Part shown: in pieces, positions 847 to 39,928 of the stretch
Position numbering within the stretch: the stretch's first letter is position 1
How the letters are laid out: the number at the start of each line of letters is the position of its first letter
Virus record (IMG/VR): IMGVR_UViG_3300032236_001859
Location: 1 to 64,000 of that record
Reading direction: 5' to 3' (one strand)
Length of the DNA stretch: 64,000 nt
Notes under the pieces: generated by a model
Told to the model about the DNA's origin: nothing
Databases searched by the model: none
What the model saw: only the letters and a program-made list of their open reading frames with translations
Made by a program: the position numbers and the translations under genes

Positions 847-1530
847 TTATGCTGCGACGATCTCGGCCTCGAGCCGAGTAATCAGGGGCAGAAGGCGCCT
901 GGTGATGTGGTCGACCACGGTGAAGTAATCAGGGGTATCCACGGGGAACTCTTTGGCGGCTTGTTGCTCGCATTGGGCGCGCATGAGTTTCAACCTGGGC
1001 AGGATAGCTTCGTCGATTTTGGCCAGGGAATCCTGTATTTTAGGTGAACTATGCGAGATGCCTGGTATGCAACCTCGCGACTTAGGTTGTTCCTGCAGTG
1101 CGTTATCACTCTTAACATGGGTCTCCCTGGACTCATATACGGAATGAAGAGATGCCTGAATTAACTTAGCAGCTGCCATAAGCGCTGTGGATGACGTGTG
1201 CTTGCACAACCCGTTGTCAATACAGAATTTCAGCGTCCCTTCTGCGCTTTTGAATATACTCGAGTCTACGCTTCTGAGAACGTCTACCAGACCGGGGATG
1301 CCAAGTGGGCAGAACGAACCACCCTTCCCTGTAAGTCTGTCCCAGATGACACTTGCCTTGTGCGACTCTATCATTTTCACCAAATCCTCCGCCCATCCAT
1401 TATCAATCGCCAGCTGTCTAACAGTTATTATTCTGGGTGCGCTCGAACATGCGATCTTGTCAGCGTTTTCAGCCATTAGCCATCTCAAGTCGTCTGTGGA
1501 AAATGTAGTCGGCATAACATCCCTTCCCAA
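847..1530 (-). CDS. hypothetical protein (~222-227 aa), lower GC
   Basis: ORF track; start may be ATG at 1515 after GGAAGGG. Confidence 0.7.
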   Translation of the reverse strand: MGRDVMPTTFSTDDLRWLMAENADKIACSSAPRIITVRQLAIDNGWAEDLVKMIESHKASVIWDRLTGKGGSFCPLGIPGLVDVLRSVDSSIFKSAEGTLKFCIDNGLCKHTSSTALMAAAKLIQASLHSVYESRETHVKSDNALQEQPKSRGCIPGISHSSPKIQDSLAKIDEAILPRLKLMRAQCEQQAAKEFPVDTPDYFTVVDHITRRLLPLITRLEAEIVAA

Positions 1531-1535
1531 AGAAT

Positions 1536-1573
1536 GAACCCCTGCGGGATCACCGCAGGGGTTCTGGTTTTTC
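1536..1573. terminator. intrinsic terminator-like hairpin, possibly bidirectional
   Basis: Perfect 12-bp stem GAACCCCTGCGG/CCGCAGGGGTTC, 5-nt loop; T-rich run on plus side, ATTCTTT on minus side. Confidence 0.7.
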
Positions 1574-1727
1574 TTTATCTATGGGTCCACGTGGGCTTGT
1601 GCCCACAGCCCTCTATTTACGCTTGGCATCCCACGGGGGTCCCATGCGTAAGATCGAACAGAGTGAGAAGTCCAGAGCGCTATTCTTAGTGCTCATCATC
1701 GTTGTCATCGCTGGGCTCGCCGCGTTA

Positions 1728-2228
1728 TCACACTTCCTGTAGGGTGTGACCATCCCTGGCGTACAGGAACTCGCGAAGGCTGACCACGCGCTCCCCTGAT
1801 GCCAGCAGTTTGTTGGCCAAGCGAACCGGGGTGTACTGGTGTGCCTTGATGCCACGCACAGGGGGATAATCGCCTTCTTGGAGCCCAGCAATGGTGAGCT
1901 CGGAGCAGAACCACTTATCAGCGGTCTGCCGCCCCCAGGGCAACACGATGGCAAAGGCGACGCCCAGCCAGTCGTATTCGGCGCCCACCTGGGTGTCACA
2001 GAACGCGCGCACCTTGGCTTCGTCACCACCACGGACCCCAATGCAGTCCCACTCATTGGGATTCCAGCCCTGGGGATCCAAGAGGTATCTGGCTCGATAA
2101 GCCGAGGAGACCCCGAATCGGTTGCCGTCTGAGAACAAGAGCTCGCAGTGGCTATAGGGGCCACGGCTGAAACAGCGGATGAGGCGATCCTCTATGGAGT
2201 GGCCTCCCTTGTAGAATAACGCGTACAT
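1728..2228 (-). CDS. permuted papain-like (NlpC/P60, YiiX-type) amidase
   Basis: N-terminal YSHCEL (His), YDWLG, C-terminal KWFCSEL (Cys), closing YTP: circularly permuted catalytic order. Confidence 0.85.
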   Translation of the reverse strand: MYALFYKGGHSIEDRLIRCFSRGPYSHCELLFSDGNRFGVSSAYRARYLLDPQGWNPNEWDCIGVRGGDEAKVRAFCDTQVGAEYDWLGVAFAIVLPWGRQTADKWFCSELTIAGLQEGDYPPVRGIKAHQYTPVRLANKLLASGERVVSLREFLYARDGHTLQEV

Positions 2229-2238
2229 GACATCCCTT

Positions 2239-2727
2239 TCAAGGCCCGCGAGGTGCCTTCACTGCGCGCACCACCACGGCCTCACGCGGGGCGGGATGGA
2301 TGCGCTGGGCCCATGTCTTGACGTCGTCGAGATAATCGTGGCCCCTGCCGAGAAGTGCACCGCGGACCCCCACATTGTAGGCGCGGACACAGGCATCCCA
2401 AGAGCCCAGGCGGACGTAGAGATCCTGCATGCGCCGGATGAAGATGCCCTCGGCGAAGGCGGTATCCTTGGCGAGGTCAGCGAAGACATCGCCGGCTCCC
2501 GCGGTTTCCTGGAAGACCGCGGGGGTCATCTGGAATGGGCCACGTTCCCCGGCACGCCCTCGCTTGCGATTGATGTAGACGATTTCACCGGTGGGGGCAT
2601 AGAAAGAGGAGGTCTCGACACCGAGGACCCCGTGGAGAACCCACTGGGGGACCTCGGGTAGTGTCGCGGAGACCGCGGAGAACACGGGTGACAGTGCCAA
2701 TAACGCAATCAAGACTACGAGTCTCAT
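2239..2727 (-). CDS. lytic transglycosylase (SLT/lysozyme-like), probable endolysin with N-terminal signal peptide
   Basis: Catalytic GVETS, GPFQM and AYNVG motifs; hydrophobic leader MRLVVLIALLALSPVFSAVSA. Confidence 0.88.
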   Translation of the reverse strand: MRLVVLIALLALSPVFSAVSATLPEVPQWVLHGVLGVETSSFYAPTGEIVYINRKRGRAGERGPFQMTPAVFQETAGAGDVFADLAKDTAFAEGIFIRRMQDLYVRLGSWDACVRAYNVGVRGALLGRGHDYLDDVKTWAQRIHPAPREAVVVRAVKAPRGP

Positions 2728-3068
2728 GGGGGCTCCTGGGGTAGTCGTGGTTGTGGGAACTCGATCTCGACTTCAAGATCAGAGTGGTCAACTGGGCAAT
2801 CGGGGTCCTCGGAGACCGCGATGCGGGCATCCAAGGATGCCGGGTATGCCTTGTGAAGGAAGCGAATGGCCAGTGCGGCGTTCTCAGCGGTGAAGCCAAG
2901 GAACTCGGCTTCGTAACCAAAGTCAGTGATCTCGGATTCCAGTAGAGCTCTCTGAATCCCGGCATCGGGGATACCGGTGATCCAATGCACCCTACGGAGG
3001 TGAACGAGTGCCAGGGCCTCGAGACGGCTCGGCAACACGGACATTATGGTGTGGAGGGGTCGGAGCAT
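2724..3068 (-). CDS. hypothetical protein (114 aa)
   Basis: ORF track; stop overlaps the transglycosylase ATG (ATGA). Confidence 0.7.
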   Translation of the reverse strand: MLRPLHTIMSVLPSRLEALALVHLRRVHWITGIPDAGIQRALLESEITDFGYEAEFLGFTAENAALAIRFLHKAYPASLDARIAVSEDPDCPVDHSDLEVEIEFPQPRLPQEPP

Positions 3069-3082
3069 GGTTGCCCCAGGGA

Positions 3083-3472
3083 TCAGATCTTGACCTGACG
3101 ACCCACGGTTTCCAGGCGCTCACGAAGAGCGTTGATGGTCCGCGCTCTCTCAGAGATGTCACGCTTGGCCTGATGAGACAGCTTCCCTGACTTCTTGGAT
3201 TTCGCAGAGATGCCATCTAAGATGACAACGATGCCATCGGCGGCTTCACGTAAGGCATCGATGAAGGAACCCGCGTCGACCTGGATCGCGGGGTTGCCCC
3301 CTACGGTCGGCAGTTTGAGGACGAGCTCCTTTCGCCATGGGCGTGCTGGGATCTTGTAGATCCCCTTGCGGATCACCTTGCAACCATGGGCACCCTTGCG
3401 GGCACCTGGCTTCAGTCCAACTAATGGCTCGACAGATGACGCTTCGACTTTAACGGGCTTGCGGGCTGACAT
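3083..3472 (-). CDS. hypothetical basic protein (129 aa)
   Basis: GAGGAG RBS before ATG; first gene downstream of the conserved motif at 3506. Confidence 0.75.
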   Translation of the reverse strand: MSARKPVKVEASSVEPLVGLKPGARKGAHGCKVIRKGIYKIPARPWRKELVLKLPTVGGNPAIQVDAGSFIDALREAADGIVVILDGISAKSKKSGKLSHQAKRDISERARTINALRERLETVGRQVKI

Positions 3473-3505: not shown

Positions 3506-3521
3506 TTTACTCGTAGTCAAG
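3506..3521 (-). promoter_or_regulatory. conserved promoter/operator motif, copy 1
   Basis: Plus strand TTTACTC-GT-AGTCAAG; minus strand contains TTGACT (-35-like). Confidence 0.7.
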
Positions 3522-4149
3522 GCCGTAGGGGTGTCGTCGCTGTTTTAGCCGCTGCCATGGCATCGCGGAGTTCGGCTTGGCTCCACATCGCTGCTTTACT
3601 CTCACCCTTGTATGCCAATGCCATCTTGGACTTCAAGAGTAGATCGTTTAGCGATTCTCCATCTTTGTCATAGAAGACAACCAGAGCACGACCATACTTA
3701 TCCAGTGACTTCGACTCGCAGATCACGGCGCGTTTCAACCAGGCCTCGACGACATCCCTTACCGCGAGACCAACTGCCTTCTGGGGTCCGGTGACCTCAG
3801 GGGTGTCGAGGCCATCGAGGCGGTAACACACCTTACGTGAGATCTGGAATCCGAGGTCGAGATTAACCCAACCCGAATCACCGTCATGGACGTCGATTAT
3901 GGAAAGCACGGGATATACGAAGGGTTTCATACCTTGAGAGTATCGCGGTTTCTGGGCGGCGTCCACATACAGGGGGCACTGGGGTACCGTGGGTTCTTCA
4001 GCTGCAATTCTCTCACGTGCAGGCCAGCTCCGCTGATAGGGGTCGAGGCAGAAGACGAGGAACAAGATGAACACGATTCCGAGCAAGAAAACCAAAGCGA
4101 AGATCCGCAGGATGCCTCCTGAGAAGAGACCAGCGAAATAGTGCATCAT
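3517..4149 (-). CDS. thermonuclease (SNase family) with N-terminal transmembrane segment
   Basis: VHDGDS, RLDGLDTPE, DKYGRAL, LNDLLLKSKMALAY motifs; hydrophobic ILRIFALVFLLGIVFILFLVF. Confidence 0.88.
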   Translation of the reverse strand: MMHYFAGLFSGGILRIFALVFLLGIVFILFLVFCLDPYQRSWPARERIAAEEPTVPQCPLYVDAAQKPRYSQGMKPFVYPVLSIIDVHDGDSGWVNLDLGFQISRKVCYRLDGLDTPEVTGPQKAVGLAVRDVVEAWLKRAVICESKSLDKYGRALVVFYDKDGESLNDLLLKSKMALAYKGESKAAMWSQAELRDAMAAAKTATTPLRP

Positions 4150-4721
4150 CGTTGGACTCCCCTGGCGACCTGGTATTGATAGGTGTGCCTGGGCAGTAGT
4201 TCGGAACCCGCCTTAACCGAGGCTGCAATGATTTCATCCTGAGTAGCCCGTGTGGACAACGCGAGATCTCGGAATGCCATGAGGGTGGCTCCCTTACGCA
4301 GCGTGTCATCCCCGAGCATGCCGACGTAGTCACCGAAGACTGCGGCCAACGCATTGATGACCCCCTGACGTGGTGCCGCCCACTCGAACGTAGGGAATGC
4401 AGCTGCGATGGGGCCGTCTGAATCAAACCTGACATACGTGAAGCCCATGTACCATGCTTTATGGAGAATAAAATCGAATGCCGTACTAAAGCCGAAGCCA
4501 CGGATATTTGGGATCTCGTTCTCGGGTCCAAACGCGCAGTAGATCCAGTATCCCCCATTGGTGTCCTCCAACATGAGGATGGGATCATCGGGATCCCTGA
4601 GCCCATCATGAATGGATTCCAGGATGTCATGATCGAGGTGGGTGAGGTGTGCTGTTGAAAGCACGGCGACCTTCATGGTCTCCGGGAATAGTGAAGGTGT
4701 TATCGATCCTACAGCGTCCAT
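4146..4721 (-). CDS. hypothetical protein with DUF5983-like domain
   Basis: LSTAHL and VRFDSDGP...FPTFEW motifs; GGAG RBS before ATG 4721. Confidence 0.65.
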   Translation of the reverse strand: MDAVGSITPSLFPETMKVAVLSTAHLTHLDHDILESIHDGLRDPDDPILMLEDTNGGYWIYCAFGPENEIPNIRGFGFSTAFDFILHKAWYMGFTYVRFDSDGPIAAAFPTFEWAAPRQGVINALAAVFGDYVGMLGDDTLRKGATLMAFRDLALSTRATQDEIIAASVKAGSELLPRHTYQYQVARGVQR

Positions 4722-4791: not shown

Positions 4792-5646
4792 CTACTTGCG
4801 ACCGTGGCCTTTGCCATGCTTGGGTGCTGGCTTCTCGACCTCAACAGCCTTGGGGGCTTCCACTACGGGGGTGTCATCGTGGACCACGATGACGGGATCC
4901 GCTTTGTCTCCAGCGTCGAGACTGTCGGGTTCCTCAGTGCTCGCCGCAGTGGTCACAGGAGTCTCATCCGCAGGGGCAGCGACATGTGCGGAATCCAGGG
5001 TGTTACCGAGGACATCATTGAAACCACCTTGGCGCGCCAAGACAATCTCCGGGGCCGCTGAGGCAACCGCACCGGCTTGATCCAGGATCGCACGCTCAGC
5101 GGTGAGATCACGGGTGATCGCGGCCTCAGCGGTGAACACGGGTTTGTCACCCATGGTCTTCGCATAACGCCGGGCCAGCTTGTCACGGTTGCTTTGCCAC
5201 CGCTTGACCTGGTCGCCATTGATACGGGAATCCAAGAGAGCCTGGTACCAATCGACGTCACCGGATTCCTCGAGGAGGTTGATGTCATCCATGGGTTTTC
5301 CATCGTACATCGCCTTGAGAAGGGCCTGCACGAGTTCGCCGGCTTCAGTGGCGATGCCAACAATGGCGTGGAAGACTTGGGGATCCACGGGGAATGGCTT
5401 GGGAGCCGGGAAAGCCCCGGCGACCATGGTAACCGGGAACGGCTTACCATATACCGCAGTTTTCTTGACGTGGTCGAGGACCTGGGATGCCCGAAGGAAA
5501 TCCTCAAGAGATTTCTTGAGAACCCCGCGATGCAGGCGATCCTCGATGTCGATTGCGGAGTCAGGGCATGCCGTTGACAACGCGGCTTCAGAATAGGCCT
5601 CAGGAGTCGTGATGACGACTTGGCCGTTGAGTGGATGCTTGGTCAT
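4792..5646 (-). CDS. mazG: MazG-like nucleotide pyrophosphohydrolase with long charged C-terminal tail
   Basis: GIATEAGEL...LLEESGDVDWY...NRDKLARRY (ExxE...ExxD metal-binding pattern). Confidence 0.85.
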   Translation of the reverse strand: MTKHPLNGQVVITTPEAYSEAALSTACPDSAIDIEDRLHRGVLKKSLEDFLRASQVLDHVKKTAVYGKPFPVTMVAGAFPAPKPFPVDPQVFHAIVGIATEAGELVQALLKAMYDGKPMDDINLLEESGDVDWYQALLDSRINGDQVKRWQSNRDKLARRYAKTMGDKPVFTAEAAITRDLTAERAILDQAGAVASAAPEIVLARQGGFNDVLGNTLDSAHVAAPADETPVTTAASTEEPDSLDAGDKADPVIVVHDDTPVVEAPKAVEVEKPAPKHGKGHGRK

Positions 5647-5987
5647 GCTACGACCTCCAACTTGGGTTTACCGGGGTTGGTTTCGGGGCCACAGCACTCA
5701 CATGGACCCTTGCAGCCCTGAGAGCACTTCGCGGTGTGGTAGTCAGCGTTGAGACGCGCAATGGCGATCTTGCTCCAGGTGTTCGTGATCAGGTAAGTGA
5801 TGAGCACTGAACCCGAGGTAACCACCAGGATGGGGTCAGTGAGGACCCCCTTGGCGAACCAGACCACGGCGAGGAAGCCGAGGACGAGTAAGAACCGTGA
5901 GGACGTCATCAACGTGGAGTCCTTCACAATTGGTTTCGTGGCATCGACGACTTGAGATCGCGAGATCTCGAATCCGAGGATATTCAT
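5643..5987 (-). CDS. putative holin (2 transmembrane helices, Cys-rich C-tail)
   Basis: SSRFLLVLGFLAVVWFA and ILVVTSGSVLITYLI; adjacent to spanin-like locus; holin role is inferred. Confidence 0.6.
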   Translation of the reverse strand: MNILGFEISRSQVVDATKPIVKDSTLMTSSRFLLVLGFLAVVWFAKGVLTDPILVVTSGSVLITYLITNTWSKIAIARLNADYHTAKCSQGCKGPCECCGPETNPGKPKLEVVA

Positions 5988-6448
5988 AGCGGCCCTTTCT
6001 TAGAACCTGGCTTGAACGGAGAGCCCAGCAACGATACCAGGCTGACGAGAACTATCACCGCCGTAAGGAAGAGTGTACCAGCAGCCCAAGCCGAAGCAGT
6101 CCAGGGGTTCCGGAAAGTAATCCCGGGGCGCATACACGCTGGCGCCGACGCCGAAGCGGTCATTGGTGAGCACGAGGTCTGGAGATAGTGTGCCGAAGAA
6201 GAAGCGGACAGGGCTGGCGCGGAGGCCGACTTCGAGCTTTTGATCGGCAAGGGACATTCCAGCGATAGCACCGAAGTCCCAGGCGTATTCGCCGAGGTAA
6301 GTGTCGGGCCGGTAGCTGACCTTGAAGGGGAAGTTGGGATCGTTGGCTTGTTTGGGGTCCTCGTAGAGCACGCCACGGTTATCAGTGACAAACATACCAA
6401 GGACATCACCAGTAGACTTTTCACGGAGGAAAAGAGTTCCCGTACCAT
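5984..6448 (-). CDS. overprinted lipoprotein with C-terminal transmembrane helix (unimolecular/o-spanin-like, 154 aa)
   Basis: +1 frame within 6000..6599; leader MVRELFSSVKSLLVMSLVCLSLITVA|C; C-terminal TLFLTAVIVLVSLVSLLG then KPGSKK; stop in ATGA overlap with holin start; host-frame T3 spikes under both hydrophobic segments. Confidence 0.6.
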   Translation of the reverse strand: MVRELFSSVKSLLVMSLVCLSLITVACSTRTPNKPTIPTSPSRSATGPTLTSANTPGTSVLSLECPLPIKSSKSASAPALSASSSAHYLQTSCSPMTASASAPACMRPGITFRNPWTASAWAAGTLFLTAVIVLVSLVSLLGSPFKPGSKKGPL

Positions 6449-6599
6449 CGGTGTCTTTCTTCCAGTTCCAGTGCATTGATGTCGCATCATACTTGATTAC
6501 ATCCTTCCCTGCTATCGAGCTCCCGGGTTGCGTGGTCAGCGATGAATAAATCACCCAGCCCACGAATGCAATGATCGCAAAACCGAAGATCTGGTTCAT
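6000..6599 (-). CDS. N-terminally membrane-anchored protein with beta-strand C-terminal half ending in Phe (i-spanin-like or OMP-like, 199 aa)
   Basis: GAGGG RBS; IFGFAIIAFVGWVIY anchor; alternating strands; C-terminus AGLSVQARF resembles a beta-barrel signal. Confidence 0.75.
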   Translation of the reverse strand: MNQIFGFAIIAFVGWVIYSSLTTQPGSSIAGKDVIKYDATSMHWNWKKDTDGTGTLFLREKSTGDVLGMFVTDNRGVLYEDPKQANDPNFPFKVSYRPDTYLGEYAWDFGAIAGMSLADQKLEVGLRASPVRFFFGTLSPDLVLTNDRFGVGASVYAPRDYFPEPLDCFGLGCWYTLPYGGDSSRQPGIVAGLSVQARF

Positions 6600-6704
6600 A
6601 GTGTTCACCCTCTTCCGGTCGCGCGTATCCAAGGCTTGGCTAACCCAGAAGTCACGCTATGGTGAGCGCGAATGCTATGAGGTCTGCCTCAAAAGGAAAG
6701 CCGC

Positions 6705-7184
6705 ATGGAAACCACGACGACGCGACAACGCTCCGTGCTGATGCTTGATTATGATGTCAATGGAGTCGGCGCATTGAGCCGGTCTTCGCAGACCCCGTGC
6801 AGCACTCCGGCTTCAGATCCATTCAGCCTCCTCGATCGCGTGAAATCTGCAAAACAAGATGAAGACATCGTTATACACGTCCATGGGTTCACGGGTTCAA
6901 TCGCTGTTGCACATCTCATGACATTGTGGCGTGAATGCTCGAATCGCGGTGCCCATCTCAGAGTTGTCTTACTAAACCACCAATCACTCCAGATCCTCAA
7001 AGTCCTCGGCCTCGGAGAAATCCTTGATGCCAGGTTGTGCCCAAAGAATGCCAGCAATAGGGTGTCCTGGGATCCCCCCAGTGAGCGCACCCTCAGACGG
7101 AACGCATTGGATACCCGCAACTGTGAATCCTGCTCGAATGCCAGACCATCGAAACCATTAGAGATGCTCTGCGGCGTCGAATAG
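6705..7184 (+). CDS. STAS-domain protein (anti-sigma-factor antagonist-like)
   Basis: IVIHVHGFTGSIAVAHLMTLWRECSNRGAHLRVVLLNHQSLQILKVLGLGEIL matches STAS core; AAGGA RBS; stop abuts convergent gene. Confidence 0.7.
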   Translation: METTTTRQRSVLMLDYDVNGVGALSRSSQTPCSTPASDPFSLLDRVKSAKQDEDIVIHVHGFTGSIAVAHLMTLWRECSNRGAHLRVVLLNHQSLQILKVLGLGEILDARLCPKNASNRVSWDPPSERTLRRNALDTRNCESCSNARPSKPLEMLCGVE

Positions 7185-7679
7185 TTATTTCGGGTTTGAA
7201 TCCCGACCAGCTTGTTCCCAACCCCGATCCCAGCCTTCGTGAAGCAGAGTACCCGTGGGATGCGGGTTCCCTGATCGCGGTCTCCCGGCTTCACGAGCCT
7301 TGGCTCCCCTGACCCCTGAATCCCTGATGACCTCCCAGGATATCCTGGAAGGCTTGCCAACATCCAGCCTGGGGTTCAGTGCCATCTCGATTGCAGCCTT
7401 GGCGTCATCTACGAGATCCCCAGTGGCCCCATTGCGGTCCATCCAGGCCACGAGGGCCTGAAGGGCGCGAAGCATGACGGCCTCGGAGCCATCACGGATG
7501 CAAATAGCATCGGGCTCAAAGGTGTCCATCCAGCTCTCCGGGGTCGTATAGGCCTCGACGAGGTGGAGGGCGTGATCGAAGTCTTCCTGGGGATCCACGA
7601 CGACACCGTAGTATCGACCATCGATTCCCCTGGCGACGACACGCCAAGCATTGGTTACGGGGTACTTTGGGGTCTCCAT
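7185..7679 (-). CDS. hypothetical protein with C-terminal Rmf/CrpP-like motif
   Basis: GAKAREAGRPRSGNPHPTGTLLHEGWDRGWEQA. Confidence 0.6.
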   Translation of the reverse strand: METPKYPVTNAWRVVARGIDGRYYGVVVDPQEDFDHALHLVEAYTTPESWMDTFEPDAICIRDGSEAVMLRALQALVAWMDRNGATGDLVDDAKAAIEMALNPRLDVGKPSRISWEVIRDSGVRGAKAREAGRPRSGNPHPTGTLLHEGWDRGWEQAGRDSNPK

Positions 7680-38401: not shown

Positions 38402-39928
38402 TCAGGCCTTCGGGGGCTGCTGCTGGAGTGTCGCGCTGAACTGGTTAGCCAGGGCGTTGGCACTCGGAGGAATCACACTGGCTGCTGGAACCGTGGGGGC
38501 CGGAGCCGCTGGGGCCGCTGGAGCCGGGGCTGCTGGGGCCTGAGGAGCCGGCCACGGGTTCGCAGGGGCTGCAGGAGACGCTGGAGCCTGGGGAGCTGGC
38601 CAGGGGTTCGCTGGAACCGCTGGGGCTGCAGGAGCCGCTGGGTTACCCCATGGCGCCTGAGGAGCCGGGGCCATGGGGGCCTGGGGCGCCGCTGGGGCTG
38701 GCCAGGGGTTCGCTGGAGCCGCGGGGGCTGCAGGAGCCGCTGAACCAGGCCAGGCGCCCGCAGGGGCTGCGGGAGCCGCTGGGGCCTGGTTGTGCCAGGG
38801 ACTCGCGGGTTGCGCCGGAGCTGGTGCTGCGGGAATCGCCTGATTACCCCAGGGTGAAGCCGGCGCAGGGGCCATGGGATACCCTGGAGGTGGTTGCTGT
38901 GCCGGTGGATACCCTGGGGCCTGTGGGTACCCCGCTGGGGCCTGGGGAGGATATCCCATTGGGGCCTGGGGTGCCATCTGCGGCATCGGGATGCCCAGAC
39001 GCGCCATGTCGTCTCCGAAGGCTTCGGCGACGAGCACGGGTCCAAACGCGGCGACCATCTTCTTGATGTGGTCATCACGGGTGAACCGCAGGAAGCAGTC
39101 TTCCCAGGGATGCCAGGCCTGGCGGCAGAAATCATCGGGGATCGGTGATGGCGTATAGTTGAGGAATGCAGGGGTGATGCCACCGGGGAAGAAGAGCTGT
39201 GGCATCCCAGGGAACTGCATGATGTTCCCGTTGAAGTCACAGAGCCCGCACTGCATCGAGGCCTGCTCCTGACCTGGCAAAGTCTTCGGAGGCAGACCCC
39301 AGAACTTGACATAGCAGCCACCAGAGGGGCTGAAGATGTCGATACCAGCCAGGTACGCTGCCTTCGCGATCTTATCGAAGGCGGTGAACGCGGATTGCTT
39401 GAGGATTACAGCCGTGTTGGCCTGCATCTGGGCAAGCGCGGCATTGTTGGCCATGATGACGACGCCCTGGGCGAAGTGCATGCTGCCCGGGTTATCCAGT
39501 GCACCGGGGCGATCCCCTTGCCGTTTGGCCAGCGCGGCCTGGAGAATAGGCACGAGCATTGGGTTCAGCTGGTTCTTCTTGAGACGACCTTTGAGCTGGA
39601 TGAAGAGACCGGACCAGGGCAGGTTGGGTTCATCGGTGATGAGATCGACACGCCCATCCATGCCCAGGGGGCGGACGAGGCCGGTGAACAGTGTTCCAGT
39701 ACCCGCGGCAACAGCAACACGTTCAAACCAGAAGTTCGAGTAATCGATGCCTTGGGCGTCGACGACCCGTGCCATGGGATACGGGGTGCCATCAGGGGCG
39801 ATCTCGGGCAGGAATCTCACGATGGAGACACCATTGGTCTTCGGTGTGAAGGCTTGAAGCGTGCCAGGCTTGAAGCAGTGTTGATAAAAGTCGCCTCTTT
39901 CAGACGAATTGTAGGACGGAGCGCGCAT
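38402..39928 (-). CDS. single-stranded DNA-binding-like protein with long Pro/Ala-rich tail
   Basis: N-terminal IVRFLPE motif as in gp32-type SSBs; lies between Pol and RecA; SSB role is inferred. Confidence 0.6.
   Translation of the reverse strand: MRAPSYNSSERGDFYQHCFKPGTLQAFTPKTNGVSIVRFLPEIAPDGTPYPMARVVDAQGIDYSNFWFERVAVAAGTGTLFTGLVRPLGMDGRVDLITDEPNLPWSGLFIQLKGRLKKNQLNPMLVPILQAALAKRQGDRPGALDNPGSMHFAQGVVIMANNAALAQMQANTAVILKQSAFTAFDKIAKAAYLAGIDIFSPSGGCYVKFWGLPPKTLPGQEQASMQCGLCDFNGNIMQFPGMPQLFFPGGITPAFLNYTPSPIPDDFCRQAWHPWEDCFLRFTRDDHIKKMVAAFGPVLVAEAFGDDMARLGIPMPQMAPQAPMGYPPQAPAGYPQAPGYPPAQQPPPGYPMAPAPASPWGNQAIPAAPAPAQPASPWHNQAPAAPAAPAGAWPGSAAPAAPAAPANPWPAPAAPQAPMAPAPQAPWGNPAAPAAPAVPANPWPAPQAPASPAAPANPWPAPQAPAAPAPAAPAAPAPTVPAASVIPPSANALANQFSATLQQQPPKA
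38420..38990 (-). repeat. coding low-complexity repeats: 7x PAxPW-like and 4x GYP
   Basis: PASPWGN, PASPWHN, PAGAWPG, PANPWPA (x3), PQAPWGN; repeated GGGGCTG/GGAGCC units in DNA. Confidence 0.85.

Follow-up and report, generated by a model that had tools for sequence, protein, structure and literature searches.

In an uncultured jumbo phage, a conserved gene (gene A) carries a second gene (gene B) overprinted in its +1 reading frame. B encodes a predicted lipoprotein with a C-terminal membrane helix, it is retained across very distant relatives, and it is coupled, or in five lineages fused in frame, to a small membrane protein (gene D) that is holin-like in size and topology. These genes were identified in a window of 64,000 nucleotides, positions 1 to 64,000 of the 216-kb record IMGVR_UViG_3300032236_001859. 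The locus combines the genetic layout of an overlapped o-spanin with the topology of a unimolecular spanin (u-spanin); nevertheless, a role in lysis is inferred and not shown. The sequence observations made in a preliminary description of this locus were all confirmed. In contrast, its interpretation, i.e., that two proteins could each bridge the inner and outer membranes next to a holin gene, was only partly supported, since dual coding and the topogenic signals of B hold but the holin identity of D and the envelope-spanning role of A do not have support or remain doubtful. The preliminary description also missed the most informative fact, which is that B is coupled to D or fused with it.

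The overprinted reading frame and its conservation

Gene A (6000..6599, minus strand, as are all the features of the module) encodes a protein of 199 residues and starts at the ATG at 6599, which follows an SD-like GAGGGTGA. The sequence upstream of this ATG is not conserved in a 94%-identical relative (locus L001), so the TTG at 6632 is not the start. Gene B (5984..6448) encodes 154 residues and extends 16 nt past the stop of A. Its start codon (6446..6448) is made from the conserved Asp51-Gly52 codons of A (gAT Ggt), and its position is conserved in other lineages; an SD-like GGAAGAAAG (6455..6463), formed by the W-K-K codons of A, lies 6 nt upstream, and equivalent purine-rich motifs are present upstream of the ATG of B in the related loci L005, L010, L013, L017 and L018. 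An alternative in-frame ATG located upstream (6488..6490) would give a precursor of 168 residues; however, it is less likely to be the start, because it is not the position conserved across lineages. The stop codon of B (TGA, 5984..5986) overlaps the ATG (5985..5987) of gene D (5643..5987), forming an ATGA (5984..5987) that is a signature of translational coupling.

In the window alone, the openness of the +1 frame is only marginally unusual (P = 0.043 by synonymous-codon shuffling and P = 0.025 by codon permutation), and in the high-GC relatives it is not significant. The window also holds many long alternative-frame ORFs, and B evolves faster than A, with 80% against 94% identity to L001; furthermore, parts of the similarity of B between lineages (SAS runs) are dictated by the conserved codons of A. 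From these observations it could be argued that B is not a functional gene, and that the open frame and its hydrophobic ends are by-products of G+C content and of the amino-acid and codon composition of A. This view is largely refuted by the relatives and is considered very unlikely; the second reading frame is under selection. Homologous +1 ORFs were found in L001, L004, L005, L007, L010, L013, L017, L018, L021 and L022, and B, with its ATG, lipobox Cys, polar linker, C-terminal helix and basic tail, occurs in 9 of 14 lineages whose A proteins are only about 30–44% identical to that of the window (branch lengths of 0.4–2.3 substitutions per site). The B-positive lineages lie on both sides of the tree of A, and the ATG and the lipobox Cys of B are located at homologous positions of the alignment of A; the helix and the basic tail are likewise positionally conserved, across saturated divergence. 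In the AT-rich loci L005 (40% GC) and L013 (42% GC), the open frames of 157 and 173 codons have P = 0.0006 and 0.0008 by synonymous shuffling, and 0 of 5000 by codon permutation. The idea that the hydrophobic +1 segments are forced by the conserved C-terminal motifs of A was rejected, given that lineages without B have ordinary, non-hydrophobic, stop-filled +1 frames despite having these motifs.

T is extremely enriched at the third codon positions of A under both hydrophobic segments of B. The counts of T at these positions given in the preliminary description were reproduced: 15/27 codons under the signal segment of B, 12/21 under its C-terminal helix, and 13/95 between them, whereas the background in 14 long genes of the window is 19.6%, and none of 7,543 windows of 21 codons in those genes reaches 12 T. 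Silent changes between the window and L001 are fewer in the overlapped part of A (21/137) than in seven neighbouring genes (451/1262; Fisher P = 5e-7); however, the first 50 codons of A, which are outside the overlap, also show a low silent rate (9/50), and the reduction may therefore be partly regional. Among 231 open frames of at least 100 codons in all six frames of the window, six satisfy the lipobox rule and five have a C-terminal hydrophobic helix, but only B has both; no other ORF in the window has a convincing lipoprotein signal.

B is absent from four of the 14 lineages, and a fifth (L011) keeps only the helix, as an N-terminal extension of D. A search for a separate lipoprotein gene in the flanks of the loci lacking B found nothing convincing, indicating that B is dispensable for A and D. 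Among the nine B-positive lineages, the ATGA overlap with D occurs in the window, L007 and L017, while L005 shows TAAcATG; in L010, L013, L018, L021 and L022, B runs in frame into D, which keeps its own strong SD. The relatives thus display several states, i.e., absent, helix only, fused and split. This ancient overprinted gene is missed by standard gene callers in every one of the contigs examined, and lysis and envelope genes of uncultured jumbo phages may be under-annotated for this reason.

Predicted properties of the three products

The predicted product of B begins with a signal peptide (6368..6448) that carries the lipobox ITVA|C. It satisfies a PROSITE-type lipoprotein rule, applied here as a regular expression only: there is no D/E/R/K in the six residues before ITVA|C, and the Cys is residue 27 (codon 6368..6370). 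Residue +2 is Ser, and the rule is also satisfied in the eight other B-positive lineages, none of which has Asp at +2. This Cys is the only residue invariant across all lineages in the alignment examined. The signal peptide is followed by a linker (6083..6367) of about 95 residues, rich in Ser/Thr/Pro/Ala and with three Cys residues, that is predicted to be disordered; polar low-complexity linkers of 95–110 residues are present in all B-positive lineages. Near the C-terminus there is a hydrophobic stretch of 19–21 residues followed by K/K/K; the predicted transmembrane helix (6020..6082; AGTLFLTAVIVLVSLVSLLGS) reaches a Kyte-Doolittle value of 2.48 over 19 residues, and the basic tail (5987..6019; PFKPGSKKGPL) fits the positive-inside rule, so it should be cytoplasmic. 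A helix followed by a basic stretch is found in every B-positive lineage. AlphaFold2 (AF2) predicted only two helices, at residues 3–28 and 115–142, with a pLDDT below 50 and no secondary structure for residues 33–103.

Gene A belongs to a phage family of about 90 clusters (90 representative homologues at E<1e-3). An AF2 model based on 64 sequences (pLDDT 90.8, pTM 0.73) shows an N-terminal hydrophobic helix at residues 2–21 (6537..6596) and an eight-stranded beta domain at residues 54–197 (6009..6440); apart from this helix and one of four residues, the model is entirely beta. No match was found in Pfam, PHROGs or NCBIfam, and a profile search of PDB sequences gave no hit even at E = 10. The preliminary description had proposed that A is a TM-anchored, OMP-like protein, but this is doubtful. 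The eight strands, the Gly-rich G-x-G-x-S/W-Y strand motifs and, in some members, a C-terminal ...GLSFSTRF resemble small outer-membrane beta-barrels (OmpX/Ail/Lom-type), and the best structural neighbours found with Foldseek in PDB and BFVD are small TM beta-barrels and phage proteins annotated as OMP beta-barrels; nevertheless, none of these matches was below E = 1e-3, their TM-scores were 0.2–0.3, and no OMP family of Pfam was matched. Only 23 of 64 family members end in an aromatic residue, the N-terminal region lacks the positively charged n-region of typical signal peptides, and the charge balance around the helix (K/R 0.59 before it against 1.64 after it) does not favour an N-in anchor. 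On topology alone a T4-type class III holin was also considered for A, with no evidence for or against it.

Gene D encodes a membrane protein of 114 residues (range 80–138) with two predicted TM helices, at residues 32–49 (5841..5894) and 53–71 (5775..5831), and a charged C-terminal tail. These are the only features on which its designation as a holin in the preliminary description rests, given that neither D nor the fused B-D forms matched any family above threshold in Pfam, PHROGs or NCBIfam, including those of holins; B likewise gave no hit in these databases.

Inferred role and comparison with spanins and holins

The explanation that we favour, with moderate confidence, is that A, B and D form a compact envelope module involved in the disruption of the host envelope at lysis. 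In this view, B is a prolipoprotein whose Cys, after cleavage by signal peptidase II, would be lipidated and, with no Asp at +2, sent to the inner leaflet of the outer membrane; the disordered linker would cross the periplasm and the C-terminal helix would sit in the inner membrane, so that B would physically tie the two membranes together. B, or the long B-D form, would be an outer-membrane tether or spanin-like element, and D the hole-forming or regulatory partner. The fusion is topologically coherent, since the helix of B would run out-to-in, the first helix of D in-to-out and the second out-to-in. [quoted passage not shown] The order of the genes, A with the overlapped B followed by a holin-like gene, mirrors that of phiKZ gp141/gp141.1 followed by the holin gp142 (PMC12894885).

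Regarding the u-spanins (Kongari et al. 2018), whose prototype is T1 gp11, B shares with this class a putative lipoprotein N-terminus and a C-terminal TMD in one polypeptide, and its size is similar to that of gp11 (154 versus 131 residues); moreover, unusual lipoboxes such as AWAC are tolerated in this class (PMC6139136). However, B has no sequence similarity to gp11, it is overprinted inside another gene instead of being free-standing, it is coupled or fused to a two-helix membrane protein, its periplasmic part is predicted to be disordered whereas that of gp11 is predicted as beta structure, and it has periplasmic Cys residues, while none of 58 u-spanins has one (PMC6139136). In addition, B is not next to an endolysin: no endolysin or other recognised lysis domain was found within about 7 kb in the window, which covers 64 kb of the 216-kb contig, or in the flanks of the related loci, and hence a lysis cassette is not demonstrated. 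Compared with the two-component spanins with embedded or overlapped genes (lambda Rz/Rz1, P2 LysB/LysC and phiKZ gp141/gp141.1), B lies in the +1 frame of a gene whose product has an N-terminal hydrophobic helix, starts inside that gene and, as in the overlapped type, ends beyond it; its linker is Pro/Ser/Thr-rich and unstructured like Rz1, and as in phiKZ a gene for a small membrane protein follows directly. On the other hand, B is two to three times longer than typical mature o-spanins and has a C-terminal helix, which o-spanins lack, so that it would not need A to reach the inner membrane. A does not have the coiled-coil or helical periplasmic domain of an i-spanin, and its orientation is uncertain.

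With respect to the class I and II holins and the dual-start holin/antiholin pairs (lambda S105/S107, phage 21 S68/S71), D is similar in size, in its two TM helices and in its charged tail, and the L011 form and the B-D fusions have three helices, N-out and C-in, like lambda S105. In the fused lineages one frame, with an internal SD and ATG for D, can yield a long and a short product, which raises the possibility that B is mainly part of a long isoform of D, an antiholin-type regulator of lysis timing that would restrain or localise D through an extra helix and a tether to the outer membrane, the split versions being secondary. The L011 form of D, with just the extra helix, agrees with this idea; nonetheless, we regard it as doubtful because the holin identity of D is itself unproven and four lineages maintain B as a separate protein with its own stop. 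Unlike in the dual-start holin/antiholin pairs, the extension here is of about 150 residues with a lipoprotein signal instead of a few residues. A search with the long B-D form found no such protein in a database of 5.8 billion proteins, although overlapping ORFs of this kind are rarely called.

Four genetic architectures of spanins are recognised, i.e., embedded, overlapped, separated and unimolecular; the origin of the u-spanins is unknown, and about 13% of the surveyed phages of Gram-negative hosts have no identifiable spanin (PMC6139136). A more speculative possibility, which we consider only tentatively, is that B-D is a merged holin-spanin device that arose when the 5' end of the holin gene extended upstream, in the +1 frame, across gene A. 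One reading frame would yield a holin-like inner-membrane protein (D) and a long form, or a coupled partner (B), carrying an extra helix, a disordered periplasm-spanning tether and an outer-membrane lipid anchor. If so, it would be the first natural intermediate showing how an overlapped o-spanin-type lipoprotein can acquire a C-terminal TMD and become a u-spanin, a route that Kongari et al. raised as speculation without an example, and it would also show that a disordered tether can substitute for the structured fusogenic domains of known spanins. The several states observed among the relatives offer a testable route for how such proteins arise by overprinting.

Genomic context of the module

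The module sits among genes of nucleotide metabolism and replication, including those for a MazG-like protein, SNase, thymidylate kinase, DNA polymerase and helicases, and an RNA polymerase in L007. This context, together with the lack of a nearby endolysin and the absence of a complete B in 5 of 14 lineages, as expected for an accessory function, would also fit an early module that modifies the envelope or excludes superinfecting phages, as T4 Imm/Sp and the outer-membrane lipoproteins Llp of T5 and Cor of phi80 do; in this case B would tether or block an envelope component instead of destroying the outer membrane at lysis. This alternative is possible but less likely, since exclusion lipoproteins are not known to have a C-terminal transmembrane helix, and the conservation of A and D across a very wide clade (37–66% GC, about 90 clusters) suggests a core function more than a moron; besides, T4 and jumbo phages also scatter lysis genes among early regions.

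Comparison of the region and of A with 50,697 phage records, using megablast and tblastn, found no match, and the DNA polymerase finds cultured phages at only about 23% identity, so no host could be inferred and an outer membrane is assumed. A word-indexed protein search with A found only the 94% relative; a scan of bacterial genomes with a narrower alignment of the family and three single-protein scans of viral contigs found no relative. Scans for promoters, terminators and tRNAs were uninformative, and a STAS-type identity suspected for the opposite-strand ORF 6705..7184 was not supported by Pfam. In all the related loci that extend far enough, D follows A; in L015, a gene of 381 residues is inserted between them.

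Reading frames of the locus and the conserved gene A

All genes in the window, which is the end of a 216-kb IMG/VR viral contig, run on the minus strand, and they include a phage replication module with a DNA polymerase, an SbcC-like nuclease and several helicases. The best match of the polymerase in a cultured phage is only about 23% identical, so this is an uncultured jumbo phage. The locus holds three reading frames, i.e., gene A (6000..6599, 199 aa), ORF B (5984..6448, 154 aa), which lies in the +1 frame of A and runs 16 nt past its stop, and gene D (5643..5987, 114 aa), whose ATG overlaps the TGA of B as ATGA. The start of A is the ATG at 6599; it is preceded by an SD-like motif, and the sequence upstream of it is not conserved in L001, the 94%-identical relative. 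The only sizeable opposite-strand ORF near the locus is 6705..7184 (+), without a Pfam match; an equivalent 144-aa gene is called on the opposite strand in L001 and in the related locus L002, so that A appears to start a transcription unit. The last 35 residues of the product of 7185..7679 (-) resemble ribosome modulation factor (Pfam RMF, E = 2e-5, just under the curated cutoff), and the same faint hit is recorded for the orthologue in L001; this could hint at a gammaproteobacterial host or at a phage translation modulator. On the other side, 3517..4149 (-) encodes a staphylococcal-nuclease-like protein (Pfam SNase, PHROG endonuclease), also conserved in L001, with a strongly hydrophobic N-terminal segment of about 35 residues; it is therefore a membrane-anchored or secreted phage nuclease.

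The observation made in the preliminary description was confirmed when its counts were repeated. The third codon positions of A are T in 15/27 codons under the signal segment of B, in 12/21 under its C-terminal helix, and in 13/95 between them, whereas the background in 14 long genes of the window is 19.6%, and none of 7,543 windows of 21 codons in those genes reaches 12 T. B fits a PROSITE-type lipoprotein rule (ITVA|C, Cys27, Ser at +2) and has a strongly hydrophobic stretch of 19-21 residues followed by a Lys-rich tail. Among 231 open frames of at least 100 codons in all six frames of the window, 6 pass the lipobox rule and 5 have a C-terminal helix, but only B has both; no other ORF in the 64 kb has a convincing lipoprotein signal. 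Nevertheless, the open frame itself is only marginally unusual in this 55% G+C gene (P = 0.043 by synonymous shuffling), and the window holds many long alternative-frame ORFs; therefore, the window alone could not settle the matter. One of these, a same-strand ORF of 282 codons (38473..39321, -), is nested in a gene for a 508-aa protein of unknown function (38402..39928, -), in a segment of unusually high G+C (0.62) and GC skew (+0.14), and may simply be a composition effect.

Gene A is a real, conserved gene. An exhaustive phmmer search found 90 representative clusters at E below 1e-3, almost all of 180-215 aa, and their alignment shows invariant Gly, Arg, Asp, Ser and Pro positions. AlphaFold2 on 64 sequences gave a model (pLDDT 90.8, pTM 0.73) with a helix at residues 2-21, two short strands and six long strands. 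No Pfam, PHROG, NCBIfam or PDB sequence match was found, and structure searches returned only sub-threshold resemblance to small beta-barrels, including designed and natural outer-membrane barrels and phage proteins annotated as OMP beta-barrels. The interpretation proposed in the preliminary description is only partly supported, and two findings caution against its view of A as a TM-anchored, OMP-like protein. One of these is that only 23 of 64 members end in an aromatic residue, and the second is that the segment before the N-terminal helix carries fewer K/R (0.59) than the 15 residues after it (1.64), so that neither a classical signal peptide nor an N-in anchor is clearly indicated.

Conservation of the +1 frame across divergent lineages

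The decisive result came from the DNA of 14 lineages of the A family, whose A proteins are about 30-44% identical to that of the window, with branch lengths of 0.4-2.3 substitutions per site, so that synonymous sites are saturated. In nine of them the +1 frame has the same set of features: a Met, a hydrophobic stretch and a lipobox Cys (ITVAC, VLISC, WMVSC or IALAC, TMASC, TIISC, VITGC, VLMAC, SGSSC, AMTAC) that is never followed by Asp; a polar low-complexity linker of 95-110 residues; a hydrophobic helix; and a basic stretch after the helix. Two of these loci have 40% and 42% G+C, and their open frames of 157 and 173 codons have P = 0.0006 and 0.0008, respectively, under a conservative synonymous-codon shuffle, and 0 of 5000 under codon permutation. 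The ATG of B is positionally conserved; in most lineages it is built from the conserved Asp-Gly codons of A (gAT Ggn), and it is preceded by an SD-like GGAAGA made from the Trp-Lys-Lys codons of A. The lipobox Cys lies over the conserved G-x-L-Y motif of A, and apart from one Ser it is the only invariant residue of the B alignment. Gene callers missed B in every contig examined.

The five other lineages carry the same A motifs; however, four of them have stop-filled or non-hydrophobic +1 frames, and the fifth (L011) keeps only the C-terminal helix. The features are therefore not a by-product of the protein sequence of A. In one lineage without B, L020, the N-terminal helix of A itself (gene at 3639..4214) contains a lipobox-like IIFLA|C with Cys at residue 16, which is probably coincidental but could mean that A is lipidated there. 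B-positive lineages fall on both sides of the tree of A, which requires at least four gains or losses, and an old origin with repeated loss is the simplest reading. Between the window and L001, silent changes in the overlapped part of A number 21/137, against 451/1262 in seven neighbouring genes (P = 5e-7) and 59/234 in the two adjacent genes (P = 0.027); since the non-overlapped first 50 codons of A are also low (9/50), this signal is only supportive. B itself is 80% identical between these two phages, against 94% for A, which fits a younger, loosely constrained overprinted frame. From these results, the dual coding is considered close to certain.

Relation of B to gene D

The link between B and D was not seen in the preliminary description. 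D follows A in every locus that extends far enough, although in L015, a lineage that lacks B, a 381-aa gene with DUF723 and treble-clef zinc-finger repeats (2150..3295) is inserted between them and looks like a mobile insertion of the homing-endonuclease type. D proteins have 80-138 aa, two TM helices, shared motifs (TSxRxLLVLxF...W..KG and YLICNT) and charged tails, and they match no known family. In four of the nine B-positive lineages B ends at the start of D, as ATGA in the window, L007 and L017, and as TAAcATG in L005; in the other five (L010, L013, L018, L021 and L022) B reads straight into D in frame, while D keeps a strong AGGAG SD and an ATG of its own. The fusion is topologically coherent, given that the helix of B would run out-to-in and be followed by a basic cytoplasmic loop, after which the first helix of D would run in-to-out and the second out-to-in. 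In L011 the lipoprotein part is destroyed by stops, but the helix remains as an N-terminal extension of D, giving a three-helix protein with N out and C in. B and D are thus one functional unit that exists in split, fused and truncated states.

Predicted topology and possible role of the module

What the sequence shows is that B has the topogenic signals of an outer-membrane lipoprotein at one end and those of an inner-membrane anchor with a positive-inside tail at the other; likewise, AlphaFold2 finds only these two helices, with a disordered middle (residues 33-103 below pLDDT 50). The rest is inferred, including any disruption of the outer membrane: in a diderm host, which is assumed here, the lipidated N-terminus of B would sit in the outer membrane and its C-terminal helix in the inner membrane, so that the protein would bridge the periplasm, a topology that is considered probable. 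The only known phage proteins with this topology are unimolecular spanins (u-spanins) such as T1 gp11, and the only known phage lipoprotein genes overprinted in the +1 frame of an upstream envelope gene are o-spanins (Rz1, LysC and phiKZ gp141.1; PMC6139136, PMC12894885). In phiKZ the overlapped spanin pair is followed directly by the holin gene, as A/B is followed by D here. We therefore favour a lysis-related module, in which D would be a holin-like partner and B, or B-D, an outer-membrane tether with spanin-like function.

This role is plausible but remains tentative and unproven, since no endolysin was found within about 7 kb of the locus or in the flanks of related loci, D has no holin homology, the linker is predicted to be disordered rather than structured, and B is dispensable in 5 of the 14 lineages. 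An early-expressed function in envelope modification or superinfection exclusion, or a role of the long form as a regulator of D, cannot be excluded. B does not belong to the T1 gp11 sequence family, nor does it fit the definition of an o-spanin, because it has a TMD, and A does not fit that of an i-spanin, because it has no helical or coiled-coil domain. Judged from its sequence, B does have the two structural traits of the u-spanin class, but it is not located in a recognizable lysis cassette. Literature searches found no description of a u-spanin-type gene nested in another gene or fused to a holin-like protein. Kongari et al. (PMC6139136) noted that a u-spanin could arise from an o-spanin that gains a C-terminal TMD, but that no example exists; the states observed in this family fit such a route.

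In the window the gene after D (4792..5646, -) encodes a MazG-like pyrophosphatase with a low-complexity Ala/Pro/Glu/Lys tail, and in the related locus L019 it encodes a 461-aa NUDIX protein with membrane segments (1178..2560); a nucleotide pyrophosphohydrolase downstream of the A-D pair may be a recurring feature. In the lineage of L013 and L014, a gene for a patatin-like phospholipase (Pfam E = 5e-27; 1392..2276 in L013 and 1335..2219 in L014) overlaps the end of D by 4 nt; a lipid-degrading enzyme directly coupled to the module would fit a role in envelope disruption.
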